A DNA stretch of 55,873 nt, the filler included, from Platydemus manokwari (lineage: Eukaryota): NCBI GenBank assembly GCA_037951405.1. It is 5 parts of 5 records of this genome, joined end to end, with 100 filler letters (N's around TTAATTAATTAA, not from the genome) between each part and the next. Parts side by side here need not be neighbours in the genome. Positions count along the whole stretch, not along the records: positions 20,550 to 31,093 come from JBBMOY011125552.1; 4 more parts are not named here. One strand, written 5' to 3'. Below the pieces are notes generated by a model. That model saw only the letters and a program-made list of their open reading frames with translations. It searched no databases and was not told the origin of the DNA. The translations under genes and the position numbers were made by a program. The first letter of the stretch is position 1, and the number at the start of each line of letters is the position of its first letter. Below are positions 7,196 to 31,093 of this stretch, one piece after another.

Positions 7196-9626
7196 GTAAG
7201 ATTTGATGCGATCATGTATTTGATGAAGTTTAAATTGTGATAAAAATCAAAGTTTTAGTGTTTTTATTAAAAATTTAAAAAAACTCTTGTTGCAGCCTTA
7301 TTTAATCACATCTGAAATGATCTCTAATATATCAATATTTGATCTATTTTATTCAACATGAATAATTGAACTCTGTAATGAAGGAAACGAATGGAATTGT
7401 TGATGAATTTGAGTATTTGTTTGTAATGATTATGTTTTTCGATGAATGTTTGATATGATTTGATGGAAACATCAATATATATATATATATATATATAGAT
7501 GATATTTTATGGGATACATTTGGTGTTGATGGGATAAACTTGATTATTTTTACATTGATAATATTTTCATTGATAAATGATTGTCATGGAAATATCTATT
7601 TAAATCTAACCTTGATATCAATAATAAAAACATTCAATGAAATCAATATTCAATATAATATCAAATGGGAACTGTTTCATTATAAAGGGATTATATATTG
7701 ATTGGAATTATAATATATTCCTCTCGTTGATTATTAATGAATATAATGCATTATATTTGTCATGATTATTATTTATCCCAACAACAGTGTAACAAATATA
7801 TCCTCATTGAAATATCCCATACATATATAGATATAGAGATAGATATGAATATATTATTATAATTATTATTAATAATACTGATCTATTGAATTGGTGTTCA
7901 GTTAAGTGTTCAGTTCCGTGTTGTTGTTATTATTATTCGTTTTGTCATTCACAATTAACATAAATTCCACTGATTCGGTGTTAGATGAATGGAAATGTTT
8001 TTTTTGTTTTTCCATTTTTCATTGTTTGCTTAATCTTTTGTTTTGTTGATTTGATTTGATTTATATTTATTTTTATCATTGATTATAAATGTGAACAGTT
8101 TTATTTTATTATAAATGCTTGTTGATATATGTGCTGTGGGGCGTATAGAATTACATATGACACACACACACATACATACATACAGACCACTCATCAAATC
8201 ATTTTCATATTATTATTATTATTATTGTCTCTAAATATCTCATTTATTTATTCTCTTTATATTTTCCTTGAATATCTATTAATATTTTATATGATTTGTG
8301 TTGAAATAATCATTTTCATGTCCATTTATATATTTCTCACCTTTTGATTCCAGACTCATTCCATCATTATAATTATTAGTTTTAATTAATTATTAATTAT
8401 TTTCTTGTCATTACATGCATGAAATATTATTTGTTTTTATAAAAACAATGATAAATTATTGACAACATATAAAGCAAATGTGTATTATATAAGCATAAAT
8501 ATTATCAATTGATATTCAAGAAATGATCCAATATATACATGTTTGTGTGTATGTGTGTGTGTGTGTTTGTAGCTTGAAGCATGATTGGATGAGATTATAT
8601 ATATTATATTATATATGTTTTATATATATATATACAATTGGTATAGATGTTGATATGATTATTATGATGATGATGATGATGAGGTTAATGTTTGATTTGA
8701 TTGATTATCACCAATCGAAACCTTGATTATTATTTTTGAATTATTATTATTGATTTTATCAGATAAATATAATCAATATTTCATTGTTAGATGTGATTGA
8801 TATTGATATTATTTGATCATCTAATTCCATTATTGATTGATATGATCGATCTAGCCATCAATACTCGTTATTATCAGGGGATACCAAATCAGATTTGTCG
8901 ATATTTTTGAATTTAAAAAAATGGATTTGATTAATTTTGTCAACTGATTAGATTGATTTGAAATTGAATTGCGGATAATTTGTTTAGAAAATCTCTTGTT
9001 ATTGATTATATAGAATTATGAATGAAATATTAAATATATTATCAATATTTAATGATATATAATGAACATTTATTATTATTATCAAATTTTATTTATATTT
9101 GTTATAAATGTTTCAGTTTTTTTTTAAATATTTTTAGAATTAATAAAATATTTTGAAAATGATATCAAATTTGATTATAATAAAATATTAATTAATAATA
9201 ATAATTTATTAGAAAATGATTATCTTTTCCAATATAAATATTGAATATGATTTCTGTTGTTGCTTGTATAATGATATATATTGGAATAAAGCATGATTTC
9301 TGTTGTTGATTTGTCATTGATCAATGGTTGTATAGAGAGAGAGAGAGATCGACAATAAGAGAGCTTTCAATGATCTAGATTGATATATTTATTTTATCAT
9401 TAAACCACAATATTATATGATTTCAAATTGTCCAGTGACTTGATCATTCTCTAATCATTTCGTTTCGTTTCTAATGTAATTTTAATCTTTCCGCTATTCG
9501 ATAGCTTGTTGCTAGATCGACGACAAATATCATCATCATCACTATCACTATCACCATCATCTTATTATATATTCAATCATTTAGTTATGTTGTTAAATTT
9601 AATTTTATACTTAAAGTGTTTGTCAT

Positions 9627-20549: not shown

Positions 20550-20704
20550 TCTTAACGAAAATTACCATTAAATTTTAAATTAATTAGAAGTAATAATTTA
20601 AACTTTCATTATTTCGTTATTAATTTCAGTTGGTAATTATAATTTGTTTTAAATTATTCAAGTTGTTTATAATAATTTATTAGGGGGTTCCATTTGTTGA
20701 TAAG

Positions 20705-23293
20705 ATGTCGAAAAGGATTTCAGAGGTTTATTTTTTGTAATTATGAGTTAGATTTTAATTATACATATATTATTTGATAGAATGAGAATGTAGGAAGTGG
20801 GGGTAAAAGAGTAATTAATCTTATTTTTAATATATTACTGATATTGTATGTGTTAGATCTGTATTGACAAAGCTTCTAGAGTTTTGCATATTAGAAATGT
20901 TTCTAGTGACGTTTTGGAGCGAGATATTGCAAATCTTGCAATCCCTTTTGGTTTGATTAGCTATTTAGTTTTAACCCGCAAGACAGGCCAGGTAAAGATT
21001 TAGTATAAAATTTTGTCTTGGTTAAAATTTAAGTTAGGCTCTAATGGAAATGCATCATGAAGAGTCTGCTCAAGCGATGGTTGATTATTATTTAAAATGT
21101 CCTCCACAATTTTTTGGTAAAAATATTGTCATCCAATTTTCTCGCTATGAAACATTGTCGGGTAGTGGAATGCATCCAGAAGCAGAAACAGCTGTAAAAG
21201 CTGCTAATGAAGATGTTAGAAAATTATGTGAAGGTGAACCAAAGCTTGTTCTCCACGTAACTGTGGAAAATTGGGAAGGAAATCGTTTAGGCCATTTGCA
21301 TTTTTATAAAGTTAATTTATTACTCATTGATAAATGTATTTATTAATCACGATTTAGCTATTTCATCGATTTGGTGCTGTGTGTCGTATTATTGTGTTTG
21401 TACAAAATCAAAGCCCACAAGCATTGATTGAATTTGAAAACGAAGTAGCGGCTCATGTTGCTAAATTGGTAAATATTTTCTGATCTTAAATTATAATTAT
21501 GAAGTACATATTTAGCAACTAGGTGGTACAAATAGTTTTTATAACCATCCGGTGAGGATTGAATTCTCGACTCGAAAGTCTCTTGATATTAAACACGAAA
21601 GTGATACTGGACGTGATTATACAATTAGTCCTGTTCGAAAGGAAGAATTAAGTAGCATACCAAGTTTTAGTAATAATTACAGCTCGAATGAGCATTCCAA
21701 TGGCAATTATATTCAACATAATGATTATTCGATGATGCGTCAAAGTTCTATTAGTAATAGCCAAATGACACCAGCTGAAGCCATTGCAATGCTACAACCA
21801 CTGCGTATGAGAATTTTCCATGATATATTCGATAATGATGTCAATATTTTTATAGTTCAACAAGCATCTAACAATCCTAGTGATACTTTGCCCATGTTAC
21901 AAAGCTTAGCTCCAACATTGACAAGTCTTCTTAATCAAAGCCAAATGAATTCAATGCATCCTCGTGAAAGTAGTCGATCAAATATGTCCAGCAGTAAATC
22001 ATCTCAACAAGGCAACAGCAATTCTGTTGTGATAATTGCTAATCTTAATGAAGATGTAAGACATTTTACATTATCATAAACAATAACTATGTGATATTTG
22101 CTTGATTTTAATAAGGGTTATAATTTGATTAAAAATGACTATCGTCAATTTTAAGCATTAATTTATTGGAATGAACTCACTTAGAGATTTTTTCGTCTTA
22201 GGGGTGGTTAAGTCTCAGGTTATTGATTAAATAAACAATGAAAAATAAAAATAAACATTGGATAATTACATAACAAGTCAAGCAAATTTCACATAAATAA
22301 AATTGTCTTTCTGGGCTTTTGTCTCTAGATAAAATTGTTACCTGTTAATCTGATACTAAATGATTTAACTTTACTCATTTATTTCATCCTTTAATTCAAT
22401 TCCTGGAATCTGCTATCAATATGGTCAACTGTGTCTTTTCTGAAATGCTGCTGATTATTTAATCTGATAACTCGTCTGATCTTGCTTGAATCTTATCTGC
22501 GGCTGTTTCTCATAAACAGCGGATAACACCAGATGCGCTATTTATACTCTTTGGTATGTTTACTTCATTTGTGTTTCTTCTTATTTTCTTATGGATTTTT
22601 TGTATAATGCGTTGTTTTATAGGAGTTTATGGTGATGTTCAACGTGTTAAAATACTCTATAATAAAAAGAACACAGCTCTTATTCAATTTACTGATGGTG
22701 AGCACGCAGCAAGAGGTATTGAATCATATTAAATGTTATCATTGATTTGACAAACTTTAGCTGTTACAAATTTGAACAACGTCAACTTGTATGGAAAGCC
22801 AATGCGTGTCAATTTTTCCAAACATACAAGTATCAGCATGCCGAAACCGGAAGAACAAAATTCGGTGCATTTGAATAAAGATTATTCGAATAGTAGATTA
22901 CATCGATTTAAGCGAGCAACTTCTCGAACAGTGCAAAATATTTATGCTCCTGGTACTGTTTTGCATCTTGCTGGATTACCTGATTCTTATGAAGAAGATG
23001 ATGTTAGAAATCTATTTGATGAATTTATGGTTACTAAAGTTAAAATGATTAATCCGTAATTTTTATTTTTATAATTTTGAATGAATGACATTTTTTATGT
23101 TTTGCAGAAATCAGCGAAAAATGGCTCTCGTTCAATTAGAAAATGTTGACATGGCTATTGAAGCTTTAATAGTAATTTATTTTCTTATTTTGATATAATC
23201 AACATGATATGTCTATCACAGAAATTACACGATCACGATGTCGGCTCAACAAAACTAAGAGTTAGTTTTAGCAAGGGTTTCATTGCGAATTAA
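20705..23293 (+). CDS. ptb: Polypyrimidine tract-binding protein (PTB/hnRNP I family, 4 RRMs). Exons 20705-20725, 20781-20810, 20857-20991, 21038-21310, 21358-21468, 21516-21804, 21856-22055, 22520-22553, 22623-22715, 22761-23055, 23108-23171, 23222-23293 (538 aa)
   Basis: All introns GT-AG and the joined exons total 1617 nt in one open frame. Motifs [10 protein letters not shown] (RRM1), [12 protein letters not shown] (RRM2), [33 protein letters not shown] (RRM3), [27 protein letters not shown] and [25 protein letters not shown] (RRM4). The first two micro-exons are less certain. Confidence 0.95.
22329..22622 (+). promoter_or_regulatory. Putative splicing-regulatory region around the 34-nt PTB cassette exon (AG-exclusion zone and UCUU motifs)
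   Basis: No AG from 22329 to 22517; TACTAAA at 22354-22360; TCTT motifs upstream and TTTCTTCTTATTTTCTT downstream of the exon. Confidence 0.65.
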
Positions 23294-23333
23294 ATGTTTC
23301 TGTTTTTAGTTTCTGTATGTTCATTTATTATTT

Positions 23334-23339
23334 AATAAA
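23334..23339 (+). promoter_or_regulatory. Probable polyadenylation signal of the PTB gene
   Basis: AATAAA 40 nt after the stop codon, followed by a GT-rich tract (GTTTGTTGTG). Confidence 0.55.
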
Positions 23340-26009
23340 GTTTGTTGTGAATTTAGTCAATTAGCGAGATTTACTTTTTATTGGTGAACTCTTGAAACAA
23401 GCCAAATTTAATACCCAGTAAAAATATCTTGTTTATCGGTATTGACAATAAATAACTATGTGCAATTTGCGCATAATATCGAATTATGGATAACTGTGAT
23501 CGGTAATGTTTGTCTATCCTAACAATTCTGTTTAAATCGCTCTAGTTTGTATTATATATCAGTAGATAATATTGTCAATCAGCTTTTTTTCCAATTATTT
23601 TGAATATATCAGTTACAAAAATATATCAAAACACTAGATAATCAATCAAGATAATTTAATTCTTTATTATTAACTTACAAGTTTAGATTTCTAATTTTTA
23701 TGTAATAATGGCACTTATGCAATGTAATCTTAAAAAGTTGTCATCAAATGTTGTTATCACCAGTGTTCAAGACATGACACTAAATATGATAATAAAACCC
23801 ATAATAAAAATAAGACAATATTTGATAGTTAATCGTTCAAAACTGGATAATTTTTTATTTGAACATTTTAGTATTAATCATATCTTTACAATCACTCCTG
23901 CTGGATTATCACGCATAAGAAATTTGATCAATATCTAAATATATAATTGGAAATTTGCAATAACAGGTGTATCATTAGCTCCAACATTAGTGTTTTTGAA
24001 GTCGCACTTCAGACCGAGACAAGTTAATCTTTTAAAATCTATGGTACTACATTTACGTTAAATTTTATTTATTATAATACTCTCTTTGGTTTGTACTATT
24101 TATAGTCTTTAGCTATTTCAGTGATTTTACACGCAACCTAAAATTTGAGATGAATCAGACTTTAGAATCCAGTATTAAGAAAAAATCTATTGATTAATAA
24201 ACAAACACGAATATTTAATTTAACTCAATCGCTACAATGAAGGTTTAAAACAATGGAATCGTGAACTCTTCTAGTGCATTTCTTTGTGCCTAGTCTTACA
24301 ATTACAAATAAATTCTCATTATTCAATATTCATTAGAAATCAGGACTCTTCTCATGAAAGTATTTTTCAATATGTCAGCAATTTTTTGCTCTACCTTTTA
24401 ACGTTTAGCAATAATCTGTGAATGGTAATAGAATGTTTAACGATCATTTTATTGATTAGATTGATTTAATTGTTATTTTTGGGGTTAAAGTGCTGTCTTA
24501 TGTAGGCATCAATGAGTCACTCGTAGAAATTCTCTACCATTATTTATTTAATGCCATGTATATTTGTTTTCGTATTGGAATTTAATATTGCAAAGTAAAG
24601 TTTATTACTATTAAATTTATTATAGGAGAGAAAAATTCTCTGTGATTAAATTTCAGATCTTGAATATTTTATTTACTGCTACTATTTATTGGGAGTGATA
24701 ATAAGTTACAAGTTATTTGATAATGTTATTGAAATATGTTACGGCTATTTGTTAATTTTATTTTATGGGTAAATTTATTATAAGCAAAATGTTAATGGGT
24801 TTTCAGATATTATTATATTATATTTTTATAAGATTTTGATCATCAAATATTTGTGTTCGATAAAGTATGGTGATTCTAATAAATAATATAAATATCCAGT
24901 ATTGTATTTTATAAATATATTGCCACCAACTTCCAGGAATTGATATTGTTGTCACATAATAATAAATGCATGTCAAATTCAAGATAAGAAAAATATAATA
25001 AATAATTGCTAGATTTTTCACCAAGATCACTAAGAGATTATTACGGATTGTTCTGATTTGGTTTAATAGGATTAGAAGACAGCAACGTTGCTATCGTAAC
25101 CTATAGTTTAAAATACAACTGCTTTTAAACATGACAGAATAAACATTTAAGCTACCTTTGAAGAGCACCAACCAACAACCAACCAACAATTAGCAATATT
25201 CTAATTATAATTTCCATTTAACAATAAATTAACAACATCTTCATATAACAACAATATTCTTAAATACTGACATTTTTATTTTCTGATAACAGCAGCAGTT
25301 CGTTCAAAATTCCCAGATCTTTGACTTCTTATTCGAATAACAAAGCAATTCCTAGCCCAGCAAAATTCAAAATATGATTTTTAATATTTGACCAATAATA
25401 TCAATTCAATTTATCTTTTTCATTTCATCGATGGTGAACATTAATTTTATGAATGTTGATATTTATTTCTTATGAACTTTAAACAAGTTTGTATTGACTT
25501 GAAATTGATCTTATTAATGATTTTGTGTTATGAAAAATAGAATTGATTCAATGACAATGAACAATAATAAGAATGATATTGATCTTGATTAGATATTGAT
25601 TAGTTGTATTGTTTCTGATTTATTTTTATAAATGTCAGATTGGGGAATGATCCAAAAGAAGAGTGACAATAAATTAAATTAATAATATTATTACATAAAA
25701 CAAATAAAATACTTCGATAAAAAAGCGCCGTGAATTTAGAGAAATTTAAATAAAGTAATATGAATGAATGAAAGAATATTAAAAGAAAACAATGATAAAC
25801 GAATTAATCGATAGTTATTACTAGATTAGAATAGTCAAAGAAATTAATAACAAAATAATAATACTGGTAAAGCAAAATTATTGTTTGTAATAATTAAAGC
25901 GAGAAAATGAGAAAATTGAGTCAGGCAAAAAGAAATATAAGCCAGAAGTAAGACTTGCTGGACTATAGAAATCTAATAAGGCGAAACTATCGAACAAATC
26001 AAGGAAATT

Positions 26010-26150
26010 GAATATTGACAAAACGGCGAAAATCTCATTACCATGCGTACCAAAAAATTGTATAAAATATAATCGAAAACCAGGGTAACTAGCCTGGAAA
26101 TTTCCAGCACAAGACTAAACTGAGAGATCATTGAAATTTTGTGTAGGAAC
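26010..26150 (+). mobile_element. Possible decayed Tc1-type transposase catalytic fragment
   Basis: Frame-broken pieces resembling QDNAxxH and WPAQSPDLNxIENLW (..TAKSH.., WKFPAQD..IIEIL). Confidence 0.3.
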
Positions 26151-27247
26151 ACTCATCTAAATTACTTGAAGACTCGACGAAATTATCGGAAGAAAACAGA
26201 AATTTACTATTTACTCCTACTATTTTTACTCGAAAGCTTTTTTGATCGTGCGTAATTTGTTCGGTGATTTAAGTAAATTTTAAGTCATTTTTAAACGAAA
26301 TTTCTAGATCATCTCATCACTTTTCTGGCTTGGTTTTCTAATATTCCTCATGTGGATATTTTGTGATTATCTGTTTGCGCAGTGGGTCAAGCATTTAAAC
26401 AAAATATTTTGTTGTTTTTACAGATCAATTTTTCATTTTTTTCTAAATAAATAAAACCTCGTTTCAACAATCTTTTAGACAACTTAAGATATCTTTAGAT
26501 TGTTCTAGTTATTATTCTGCTAACATCATCATACGTGTTACTGAAGCCCTATAGGACTAGTTACAGGTGCCATAAAATGTTCAAACTCAACCTTATGGTT
26601 AATATTATAATAAAAATAGTTTACCAGATTCTAAGAATTTTTCTCAAAATATTAGAATATAAAAACCTCTTGGCGGTAATCCAAATTTCAAAAATAATTC
26701 ACCGATAAATTTCGATTTACTCAAAAGCTTCCAGTTAGAATTTTTTTTATCGAGAATTAACGGAAATTTATTTTTTGATGAATTTTCGTGAGTGTCAACA
26801 ACAAATTTTGAATTCACTTATGTAGTGATAATTGGTGTTGGTGTATCTCATGAAATTATAATTAACTAATTTTTTCCGTCTGATAGTTTTATTAAAATTT
26901 TGTTATTATTTCCCACTCATAAATTATAAACAAATATTTTATTTCTTTCAGTCGCTATATCAAATGATTTGTTTTAAATTTGATCATTTTCTCTCATATT
27001 TTCTAAACCGATTCACTTCTAATAGGCGGCAATTTTTAATTTGGTATTTTGTTTTTGTGAATTTAGAGAATAATGAATATTTTTTTCATATCTATCGATT
27101 TATAAAATAATAATAATAATAATTTAATTGTCTACCGCTTTTACTTTAAATTAATTTGTTTATCGAGTTTATATTTTCGCTAATTTTTTTTGTGCTATTC
27201 ATAAGCACCCATTCTCAACACAACATAATCCAACATAACATTGTGAA

Positions 27248-27848
27248 TGTAAGCTGCTACTTTTTTTAAAAAACGCATCGAAAACGAATTCAAAAGACTC
27301 GACATTCAATTCTATTCAAAGACGATTATTTAAACAAATAAATAAAATTTAATAGCAAATTAAATTCAATATAAATTCTTTTTGATATTCTCACATCCTC
27401 CTTTTTTAAAATCTTTGATTTTCATTGTATTCTTGATTGTCATTGTATCGAATACTCGTAATATTCATCCACATAAAGCTCTCTTATTCTTCTATCTTTT
27501 ATGACTTCTCTATATCTTCTTTAAATCTAATCTACATCTTTTTATACTCTTGATATATTCTCTATATGGCATCACATGTTTCTACTTCTTTTCCTGAATT
27601 TACACTCATCAATGTTCTCAGAATCGAATCCATATGTGTGGTCGCCATGTAAGCTGCTACTTTTTTTTAAAAAAACGCATCGAAAACGATCTCAAAAGAC
27701 ATGTCATTCAATTCTATGCAAAGATAATTATTTAAACAAATAAATAAAATTTAATACCAAATTAAATTCAATATAAATTAAAATTCAATATAAATTCAAA
27801 TTCAATATAAATTTAAATTCAATATAAATTCTATTTGATATTCCCACA
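27248..27848 (-). mobile_element. TRIM-like miniature LTR retrotransposon (601 bp)
   Basis: Direct repeats 27248-27395 and 27648-27848, both TG...CA. Perfect 5-bp TSD GTGAA (27243-27247, 27849-27853). On the minus strand: PBS TGGCGACCAC next to the 5' LTR and PPT AAAAAAGGAGGA next to the 3' LTR. The 252-bp interior has no pol. Confidence 0.92.
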
Positions 27849-30800
27849 GTGAATATAAACAAAACTTAATTAGCTGCATGCATAATTTGAGAAAAAAGGT
27901 GTTCCTAGTTTGACTTCGTTGACATTGCGAAAAAACATTTCAATGTAATTGGTTGTGTTAGTTATCTAAACTGTCTGTCCTGTCTTTAAATTGTAACTTA
28001 CTCAAACAAGAAATGTAATTTAAACAAGTCTGTATTAAGTTAATTAAAATTCTGAAAATACTACACGACTAGCACAAGCACAGAAGGTTGTCCAGACAAT
28101 GATCAAAGTAACTTGAAAATAAAGATGAGAGGTAAGGAAACACTTAGAAAACATAGGTAAACTAATTTGTAAGACATTAAGTAAAAACATCCAATTCAAA
28201 TGTAGATATTGCTGATTCATATCTAGAAAATTAAAGAAATTCTGAAACCAAAATCCATTAAATTTTACTCTGGTACTAATTCGCTGGCATAATAATTCAA
28301 TGATTTAAGTTCAACAAAATGGTCCTTAAATTAAAATTAAAATTTGTTGAGTGGATTGTAAAATCTATGTAGTTTATTTAATTATATTCTTTAAAAACCT
28401 TTTCAAGTTTTTACTTAGGTACTTAAGAAGAATTTTAGTTGTTTGAGATAAAATGTTTAATATAATAGAGCTTCAAAATCTCATAAAATTTGATTATTTG
28501 AAAAACGGGCCATGGTGTATCAATTTGCAAATCAGCGAGGACCTCCTTTTGAAAATTAGAAGCAAATTGAAGGATACTTTAAATTTTTACAATTATTTTG
28601 ATAAAAAATAAGTGATATTAGATTATTAAACAAGTCTGGAACTTTCTAACTCGATTTATAGCTAAAATTCAAAATCAAAAAAATCATATGGAGTTGTAAT
28701 TTAAATAGGAACTTGATTTAAAATTCTATTTAGTTCCTATCAGACACCATAAAACAAAGAAATCAATTTTAACAAAATAATAAAAAATCAAAAATAAATA
28801 TTTAAAAAAATATTGTTATATAAAATTTTATGATTTCTTGATGTGTTCTCCTTTCTATTTCAAAGTTCAGATAGGAAAAAAAAGTTCATAGAGGAAAACA
28901 TCAGGTAAGATAAATATAAAAATCAAAGTATTACTTTGTATTTAAAACATTGAATCGACATTAAATTGTGATAGAATTTCACTGTTTTTATTCTTTTTCA
29001 TCTCAAATTGAATTTCAAGTCAAAATATGATAGAAATATCATTATGAATGAATTTGAACTTAAATAATACACGAAAAATCATTACATTAAAATTAAATTG
29101 AACTAGTTTTTTACTCAATTCAGTAATCAATTATATTCTATTGGGTGTTAGCTGCTTAATTATATTGACCACATTGTTTTGCTTGACCCATTTGGTAAGT
29201 TCGATTGGAATCAATTTTATACTAACCATATCTCTAACAAATCAACAGTAACTCAAATTTTATTGATTCAAAAAACCTTCTAATATTTAATTGGCCAATA
29301 AAAGATTCATTCAATCAAATTAATTACTGTTAAAAGTCAGATAATCATTGGGAAATCTCATTCTTTATCGATTATTGTCACTGATTTAGATTAGCGAGTA
29401 TTATCTATAAGAAATTATGAAAAATACTTCCTCGTACAGACATCAATGTAAAATCCCATAAAAATCTTTCACTAATCGTAACTGGGAAATTTAAATCCTC
29501 TATTAAAATTTCATTCACAATTTGGCCTTGGGCACTTAAAAACACTATATCGATTGATAGATATAAACAAAGAAAATTATTATTTGCGAATAAGAAATTA
29601 TCAAATCGATCTCAAATTTGATTGGTAGACGTCAATGATAAAATAAATACTATGACATATTAGTAGTATTGAAAACTGATTTTTGGTAAGTAGATTTTTT
29701 TTAATAATATTCTTTTTTAAATGTCATGATATTGTTGAATATTCGTTTAAATTATTAGCATAATCAATACATTTTGGTTCTCATAAATATTTTTCGTATA
29801 ACGAATTGGATTTGTTTGAGTTTTTATTGGTTTGAATGAGATATTTGAAATAACATTGATCCGGTCGATATATTGGTGGATATAATAAAGTCTATCCAAT
29901 CTGTTAGTATTCGTTGTTATTATTAACAATCTAATAATCGATGGCATTCATTTGAATGGAAGACTCGATGCCATAAATGAGATTCATTTCCAATGGGTTC
30001 AGTGTATTGTGTGAGTATAAATAGATATCATATTCAGTTGCAAAATCATTTTGGTGGCTATTACGAGATCTGATTATAATATCGGCTGATAGACTTTTGT
30101 AGTTTTAAAGCTAATTTATATGAAAACCTATGATTCATTCATGTTCCTATCGACAGTATATGGTAATAGTTGTATAGGGAGAATTAAATCGTTATCAAAA
30201 AGTGTGACAACATATAATTAAAAATGTGTGAAATTTTCGGGATTTAATGATCACCGGTGGACTCAAACCGAGGTCAATTTATAGAACTTACAATAAGACT
30301 CACAAAGATCATGAAGTCAATGAAATTGTTTTCCGCTTATCAAACCATATATCTACATTCGATATCACAGACTAAGCAGAATTCATAAACACCCAGTTCG
30401 TCGGGAAATTCTATGCCACTTACCTTATTCTTAACCATTTAGTCCTTACCACCAGTATACCAGAGAAAGACAAAATGACATAATACCTGGTCACCGGTAT
30501 ACCAGTGAGAAGATACATGTTATATTATAAATACAATCATATCTTTTGTGGTCACTATTCTGTTGACCGGGATATGATTAATTATTTGTTCATTCTGGCT
30601 CAGGAGCTCAGGCAAGAGGGGAAAAATATCTCAGGACCTCAAGTTTCAAATGTTTGAAATGACATGTGAATAATATTCGGTGATATGTTGAAAAATTTTG
30701 AAATTTTTAACTTTTACTTTAGTTCGCTTGGAGTACCGGTAAATTTATATAGGTGGTCTCGTAATAAATGTGTTACATATTGGTCCCATTTGTTTGACAA

Positions 30801-31018
30801 TGACATAAATGATAATGTACTTCCGAGCTTTCGTTTAGTTAACAATTTGCATTGATCTCAGAACAAGCAAACTGAAAATGCTTTTTTGAAAGATAAAAAT
30901 GTTATCGTTCAGAACAAATTGTTGGATATGTTTTGTCTAAACGAAAACGATTTGTACATAAATCGCCAATTTTTTGGGTTACGTAGAATTTTCTTCTGAA
31001 ATGACTGGACGAGAGTAT

Positions 31019-31028
31019 ATTATTATTA

Positions 31029-31092
<64 letters not shown>

Positions 31093-31093
31093 T
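31019..31093. repeat. (ATT)n microsatellite at contig end
   Basis: Directly visible. Confidence 0.95.

Follow-up and report, generated by a model that had tools for sequence, protein, structure and literature searches.

Encoded in a 55,873-nucleotide (nt) stretch of Platydemus manokwari DNA, filler included (assembly GCA_037951405.1; the window), is a polypyrimidine tract-binding protein (PTB) whose RRM3 is built in part from an exon of exactly 34 nt (positions 22520–22553, + strand). This exon is, with near certainty, homologous to the 34-nt PTB exon of vertebrates, in position as well as in phase. In the reading that we prefer, at a probability of roughly 0.55, it is the orthologue of PTBP1 exon 11 and PTBP2 exon 10, a regulated cassette with a proposed PTB feedback. 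In mammals the level of PTB, a master repressor of alternative exons, is set through skipping of its own exon 11. Regulated skipping of the window exon in this species is probable; coupling of that skipping to nonsense-mediated decay (NMD) would, by analogy with the vertebrate genes, follow with rather less confidence. That PTB itself is the repressor of the cassette is a tentative suggestion from the same analogy, and an autoregulatory feedback loop at the window gene is proposed on this basis.

The gene occupies positions 20705–23293 of the + strand, in a 10.5-kb piece of the window (20,550–31,093; JBBMOY011125552.1) that is AT-rich (G+C ~27%), and was delineated by reading the three forward frames, by domain and structure matches and by RNA joints in a relative. 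It runs from an ATG at 20705 to a TAA at 23291–23293 and comprises eleven exons, with every intron bounded by GT and AG. Exons 1–6 lie at 20705–20725, 20857–20991, 21038–21310, 21358–21468, 21516–21804 and 21856–22055, and exons 7–11 at 22520–22553, 22623–22715, 22761–23055, 23108–23171 and 23222–23293. Homology searches were made with single exons as queries. The exon pieces match RRM_5 and RRM_1, and a 97-residue piece (22763–23053) matches the RRM3–4 structures of PTBP1 and PTBP2 with E values of 9e-20 to 2e-18 (9e-20 for human PTBP1), compared with only 1e-4 for hnRNP L. Since the RRM3–RRM4 piece fits the PTBP1 and PTBP2 structures so much better than hnRNP L, we assign the gene from its sequence as a PTB orthologue. 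Hallmarks of PTB/hnRNP I are present, namely RRM3–RRM4 with the PTB-specific linker (KDY.NS.LHRFK) and the C-terminal LRVSFSK motif in the last exon. Protein-cluster comparison returned generic PTB clusters only. The best full-length relatives, from mixed eukaryotes, are 38–55% identical, and in a full-library search the 97-residue piece had one close relative, the product of a 1371-nt genomic contig of another related species (L001), the remaining PTBs being 34–55% identical.

Preceding the cassette is exon 6 (21856–22055), which ends in phase 0 within the β1 strand of RRM3. The cassette itself contributes helix α1 of RRM3, in the form of 11 codons and the first base of a glycine codon, and is flanked by AG (22518–22519) and GT (22554–22555). 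Following it is a 93-nt exon (22623–22715), which in animals invariably accompanies the 34-nt exon. This pair had been described in an initial annotation of the window, and its coordinates are borne out by the reading frames, by script and by splice junctions in the RNA-like run of a related species (X1, below). The upstream intron (22056–22519) is 464 nt long, about ten times the usual length in this gene, and the downstream intron (22554–22622) is 69 nt long. Both had been described as the longest in the gene; this holds for the 464-nt intron, whereas the 69-nt intron is only the third longest, behind intron 1 (20726–20856, 131 nt). The other introns measure 45–52 nt. The 51-nt intron (21805–21855) and the 69-nt intron are each a multiple of three without in-frame stops, such that retention keeps the frame open. 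The former is removed in the relative’s mRNA, and the counterpart of the latter in L001 is not a multiple of three, so that the open frame in the window looks like chance.

Comparison with other animals was made by fetching the genomic loci of named search hits and mapping their exons by script. All six animal PTB genes mapped in this way have a 34-nt exon entered in phase 0 and then a 93-nt exon. The 34-nt exon lies at 8401–8434 of L002 in the cnidarian Xenia, 7949–7982 of L006 in the cnidarian Exaiptasia, 8407–8440 of L004 in the nematomorph Gordionus, 2936–2969 of L005 in the rotifer Adineta, 14048–14081 of L008 in the insect Ranatra and 21032–21065 of L007 in PTBP3 of the bird Uria aalge. 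The proposed homology with the human 34-nt PTB exon is thus upheld by the same position and phase in RRM3 and by the 34 + 93 pair in six other animals. The deposited model of Uria PTBP3 (P0024) lacks the 34-nt exon, the following exon being lengthened at its upstream end instead; a pattern search recovered the missing exon (AITPDGLFILF; L007:21032–21065), which in the DNA is bounded by AG and GT. In short-intron genomes the introns flanking the cassette are outliers in length, at 176 and 96 nt in Gordionus (median 50) and 170 and 640 nt in Adineta (median 55). The Exaiptasia gene contains a second 34-nt exon near its 5′ end (L006:3104–3137; RTSDDLLANMA), which recalls the regulated 34-nt exon 2 of PTBP3/ROD1 and has no counterpart in the window gene (PMC1940037, PMC4477659).

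A comparison of intron positions had been suggested in the initial annotation for bilaterians. Made across animals, it shows that eight intron positions of the window gene recur, in the same phase, in Gordionus, Adineta, Xenia, Exaiptasia, Ranatra or Uria. The window gene has an animal-type exon–intron structure. The amoebozoan Pelomyxa shares with it only the intron preceding the 34-nt exon; in its gene the 34 nt and the following exon are one continuous exon, with a phase-0 intron before SITCQKLFILFG and none after (L003:2401–2519). As Pelomyxa has the first intron only, the boundary on the upstream side of the cassette is older than animals; the downstream, cassette-creating intron is younger and would postdate the amoebozoan split. 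A tree of the 97-residue piece was unresolved and placed the window gene on a long branch beside protists; given the animal-type introns, we read this placement as an artefact.

Skipping of the 34-nt exon, by joining 22055 to 22623, gives 35 out-of-frame codons and then a TGA at 22773–22775 (+ strand), 280 nt before the junction at 23055 and with two junctions downstream. This consequence had been predicted in the initial annotation, with a distance of about 280 nt, and a script reproduces it. In most animals the skipped frame ends eight codons in, at a TGA or TAA formed from the V–K codons of VQRVK (GTG or GTA followed by AAR). In the window these codons are GTT AAA (within 22641–22652), as they are also in L001, and so in this lineage the usual early stop is lost and the frame runs on for 35 codons to 22773. 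By script, all mapped animal PTB genes, the window gene included, reach a stop 5–35 codons after skipping.

Transcripts lacking the exon were sought among word-indexed proteins with a profile of N-terminal halves ending ...SNLNxx, keeping truncated proteins within a length window. Of the 120 open reading frames listed, 17 end just past that strand with an eight-residue tail that fits the +1 reading of G-VYGDVxRVK, the signature of an absent 34-nt exon. Among them are vertebrate controls (an orang-utan PTBP1 isoform and a frog entry) and insect forms, namely an annotated isoform of Anopheles atroparvus, a transcriptome-derived open reading frame of Lygus hesperus and an entry of Diaphorina citri. 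In a 2043-nt intron-less, dipteran-like cDNA contig (L009), ...AACGAGGAG is joined straight to the VYGDV exon, and RRM3–4 continue in another frame to the natural stop. The skipped form is assembled here at full length (L009:1–2043, run SRR20950095), so that the unproductive isoform can be abundant in some dipteran samples. In a JGI contig (L010) the product has the skipped-exon form and is 99.5% identical to a PTB fragment of the sponge Geodia barretti. This contig is intron-less from RRM2 to RRM4 but past RRM1 still contains a stretch resembling an intron; it most likely represents partly spliced RNA, and may alternatively be a retrocopy. The exact exon is skipped in insects and probably in a sponge, and the splicing event itself is therefore old. 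A literature search of limited coverage, which is not proof of novelty, returned no paper on this exon or its skipping outside vertebrates.

Surrounding the cassette is a region of unusual conservation. The contig L001 aligns with the window from 22303 onward, and the intronic block between this position and the exon (22303–22519, 217 nt, + strand) is 93.5% identical to it. Within the 34-nt exon 33 of 34 bases are identical, and the first ~40 nt of the downstream intron (22554–22593) are 86% identical, with the rest of that intron at ~54%. By comparison, the coding exons are 78–87% identical, and the other introns, together with the unalignable 5′ half of the long intron (22056–22302), are at a noise level of 37–54%, or 44–52% when the other introns are taken by themselves. 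Third codon positions outside the 34-nt exon differ between the window and L001 at 72 of 148 sites (49%), compared with 1 of 11 within it (binomial p ~0.008). Three of the five substitutions in the conserved part of the downstream intron are T-to-C, such that the tract stays pyrimidine-rich. The same region is preserved in X1, in which 22276–22549 differs by four mismatches and one indel in 274 nt (1.8%; 98% identity), compared with ~13% for the exons. Both flanks and the synonymous sites of the cassette are under strong purifying selection. A structured RNA in the conserved block was considered and dropped: the block (22303–22519) had no Rfam match at E up to 1, and 22276–22560 folds no better than its shuffles (z = -0.06). 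The one Rfam match of the piece is a weak SNORA33-like hit at 26549–26680 on the - strand (E = 0.49), well below threshold.

Directly upstream of the cassette 3′ splice site is a 189-nt AG exclusion zone (22329–22517, + strand); no other AG-free run on this strand of the 10.5-kb piece is as long. When the stretch was shuffled by mononucleotide, only 67 of 200000 shuffles were without AG (p ~3e-4). The zone is kept in L001, at 192 nt, and in the five mapped invertebrates the AG-free zone preceding the cassette is the first or second longest within its gene (Xenia 118 nt, Exaiptasia 100 nt, Gordionus 130 nt, Adineta 110 nt and Ranatra 94 nt). In human PTB exon 11 the zone is 381 nt long, with a verified branch point at -351, and in Fugu it is 590 nt long; long AG exclusion zones have been argued to predict alternative splicing (PMC1431707). 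Near the 5′ end of the window’s zone is CUGAUACUAAA (22350–22360, + strand), in which CUGAU overlaps UACUAAA, and a U-rich tract follows. Because the zone is long and the placement of CUGAUACUAAA matches that of the human -351 site, a distant branch point is predicted here, with its branch A likely to lie at about -161 to -167 from the 34-nt exon. The 11-mer UUAAUCUGAUA occurs twice in the zone (22344–22354 and 22459–22469), and CUGAU occurs four times; these repeats may be redundant branch points or sites for another factor.

Bounding the AG-free zone on its upstream side is a 26-nt pyrimidine-rich element (22303–22328, + strand) that contains UCUU, UUCU and UCUCU and ends in AG. All 26 of its bases are identical in L001, and from its sequence it is a candidate PTB site or decoy 3′ splice site. 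In the downstream intron a UCUU/UUCU cluster lies at 22575–22590, and the three TCTT words in these 69 nt amount to ~6.6 times the density of the piece (Poisson p ~0.01). TCTT clusters had been reported in both flanking introns; the downstream one stands, whereas in the 464-nt upstream intron five TCTT against 3.0 expected is not a significant enrichment. Over-represented in the conserved upstream block are UCUG (seven against 0.57 expected), CUGAU (four against 0.27 expected) and AUCUG. Relative to the other introns of the gene, the cassette flanks are 2–4 times as dense in UCUU, CUCU and UUCU in the window, Xenia, Exaiptasia and Adineta, four of the five species compared, the fifth being Gordionus.

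The PTB stretch is contained in just two public runs, X2 (DNA, in which it is whole and identical, and which may be the source of the sequence) and X1, and the RNA evidence consists of assembled contigs, which drop rare variants. The exons of X1 are 84–90% identical to those of the window, and the other introns are too diverged between the two to align. In X1 a 1125-nt contig joins all exons from exon 1 onward and ends 30 nt into the cassette, and a 618-nt contig begins at 22520, crosses the 22553/22623 junction unbroken and continues into later exons. Nine splice joints are recovered in these contigs, including removal of the 51-nt in-frame intron, 22055>22520 (read as 22045>22520, with 10 diverged letters between) and 22553>22623. 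As the X1 contigs carry both flanking junctions, the 34-nt exon is real and is included in the relative’s main mRNA, at a word depth of ~200. A third contig (366 nt, depth 18, ~9% of the mRNA word depth) is unspliced and spans 22276–22549, which accounts for the two mRNA contigs breaking inside the 34-nt exon. This unspliced contig may mean slow splicing, intron retention or DNA in the library.

A switch of the following kind would be consistent with these features. The branch point would lie ~160 nt upstream of the cassette, at CUGAUACUAAA (22350–22360), and proteins bound to the conserved pyrimidine- and UCUG-rich elements would block use of the exon. Candidate blocking elements are 22303–22328 upstream of the branch point, the UCUG/UCUU-rich stretch between the branch point and the exon, and 22575–22590 downstream, and, as is the case in human, PTB itself would be the most likely binder. 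The skipped mRNA would code for RRM1–2 alone and would be removed by NMD. High PTB would thus bring more skipping, and PTB output would fall.

In vertebrates, three exons of 34 nt, namely PTB exon 11, nPTB exon 10 and ROD1 exon 2, share conservation of the region upstream and repression by PTB, from which non-productive mRNAs result (PMC1940037). The window locus shows the same layout on a smaller scale. For human PTBP1 exon 11, PTB-driven skipping leads to NMD (Wollerton et al. 2004, as related in PMC1940037 and PMC1431707). The window exon resembles PTBP1 exon 11 in its 34-nt length, its position and phase in RRM3, the VYGDVQRVK exon that comes next and the frameshift to a premature stop, as well as in the long AG-free zone, the branch-point-like UACUAAA/CUGAU near the 5′ end of that zone, the conserved upstream intron and, less clearly, the pyrimidine motifs on both sides. 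It differs in that its AG-free zone is shorter (189 nt; human 381 nt, Fugu 590 nt), that its dominant upstream repeat is UCUG/AUCUGAU, and that its stop after skipping lies 35 codons downstream rather than after 8 codons as in the vertebrate and insect skipped reading frames found here. For the window exon, moreover, skipping, decay and PTB dependence are inferred.

PTBP2 (nPTB) exon 10, which is repressed by PTBP1 and by PTBP2 itself, is a homologous 34-nt exon; its AG-free zone measures 438 nt and its flanks are conserved to a very high degree (PMC1431707, PMC1940037). It is the closest match for the near-invariant flanks of the window exon (98% to X1 and 93.5% to L001). Unlike the PTBP2 system, the window carries no sign of a cross-regulating paralogue, with one PTB gene visible in the piece. 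In PTBP3 (ROD1) the counterpart is exon 10, again the 34-nt exon; its branch point is conventional and nothing is reported to point to its regulation (PMC1940037). The bird exon has an AG-free zone of 53 nt, which fits the reported non-regulation, compared with 189 nt in the window. The exon of PTBP3 that is regulated is exon 2, likewise 34 nt and near the 5′ end (PMC4477659), for which the window gene has no counterpart. The window gene also shares with SR and hnRNP genes subject to unproductive splicing its identity as a splicing factor, a frame-disrupting splice choice and unusually conserved non-coding sequence. The regulation of SR genes by alternative splicing coupled to NMD (AS-NMD) is conserved between kingdoms yet evolutionarily flexible, according to Lareau and Brenner (2015, PMC4379411), whereas for PTB the exon retained in vertebrates is the very one present in cnidarians and probably in sponges.

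Several observations weigh against a PTB-driven feedback switch at this exon. The 22055>22623 junction, proposed in the initial annotation as the diagnostic of skipping, was not found among the X1 contigs, which lose rare variants, while the inclusion joints were seen; this suggests that any skipped form is scarce there, and NMD would keep it rare. Canonical PTB motifs are only modestly enriched upstream, where UCUG/AUCUGAU dominate and could be branch points or the sites of another factor, and the Gordionus flanks show no enrichment of UCUU, CUCU or UUCU. The early stop at the RVK codons is missing in the window lineage, in which the stop lies 35 codons in. In Caenorhabditis elegans, the ptb-1 cassette exon seen on arrays has no premature termination codon and is insensitive to loss of smg-1 (PMC2265522), and so the loop need not be universal in invertebrates.

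The exon could instead be constitutive, inherited and always included, with no feedback. The AG-free zone and the conserved introns would then serve only recognition of a very short exon, which would depend on strong intronic enhancers and a special branch-point arrangement where the genome otherwise splices introns of 45–52 nt. The RNA contigs of the relative, which hold the inclusion isoform and an unspliced form only, are what would be expected of such an exon, and in vertebrate PTBP3 the 34-nt exon is retained, its branch point is conventional and little suggests that it is regulated (PMC1940037), so that homology of the exon alone does not prove regulation. This vertebrate constitutive homologue, however, lacks a long AG-free zone, and the window has one of 189 nt. 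The more than 250 nt of near-invariant intron and the synonymous constraint exceed what splice signals need, and skipped transcripts exist in other non-vertebrate animals; we consider a constitutive exon unlikely. Also unlikely, to a similar degree, is a regulated cassette without autoregulation, in which another RNA-binding protein would use the same frameshifting skip to turn PTB on or off by tissue or stage, for example a CELF- or MBNL-like protein acting on UCUG, CUG or UGCU. The most enriched words of the conserved block (UCUG, AUCUG, CUGAU and UGCU) are not optimal PTB motifs. In mammals RBM4 is another factor that acts on PTB exon 11 (PMC3087008), and on Tpm1 exon 3 MBNL1 and PTB act together at UGC/CUG clusters (PMC3643581). 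Set against another regulator are the UCUU/UUCU/CUCU clusters at 22303–22328 and 22575–22590, pyrimidine-rich in the relative too, and the fit of CUGAU to the branch-point consensus. UCUG, moreover, includes the UCU core contacted by the RRMs of PTB.

Far less probable than either is that the conserved intron block is an element of its own that lies beside the exon by chance: a small RNA from the intron, perhaps, or an enhancer or an opposite-strand gene. Conservation alone names no function, and the block contains several CUGA (D-box-like) words. Yet neither the Rfam search nor the folding described above distinguishes the block, its substitutions are without codon periodicity, and its conservation continues unbroken through the splice sites, the exon and the next intron. 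AG is specifically avoided in it, a property explained only by the constraint of 3′ splice-site scanning. A regulated cassette, for which the locus has strong independent hallmarks, with PTB feedback remains our preferred account.

The distribution of the exon suggests, tentatively, that a switch of the PTB exon 11 type is ancestral to animals, the same exon serving from sponges and cnidarians to vertebrates. Such an ancestral switch would, again a little short of even odds in our estimate, comprise the 34-nt RRM3 cassette, a distant branch point in an AG-free zone and conserved pyrimidine-rich flanks. It is possible, at a comparable level of doubt, that the fast-evolving, short-intron lineage of the window keeps the switch under stronger constraint than its protein sequence. 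If the same exon works alike in distant animals, the feedback loop would be more than 600 million years old and fixed at the level of the exon, and would rank as one of the oldest exon-level AS-NMD circuits known. This would contrast with the SR-protein circuits, described as evolutionarily flexible (PMC4379411). With its 45–52-nt introns, one 464-nt intron and a near-invariant flank of ~260 nt, the locus is compact and convenient as a model, and could serve for the study of how a distant branch point and repressor sites control a very short exon.

Beyond the PTB gene, the remaining 7.7 kb of the piece (23300–31093) contains no recognisable coding sequence. At the end of the piece, from about 31000 to 31093, is an AAT/ATT repeat.

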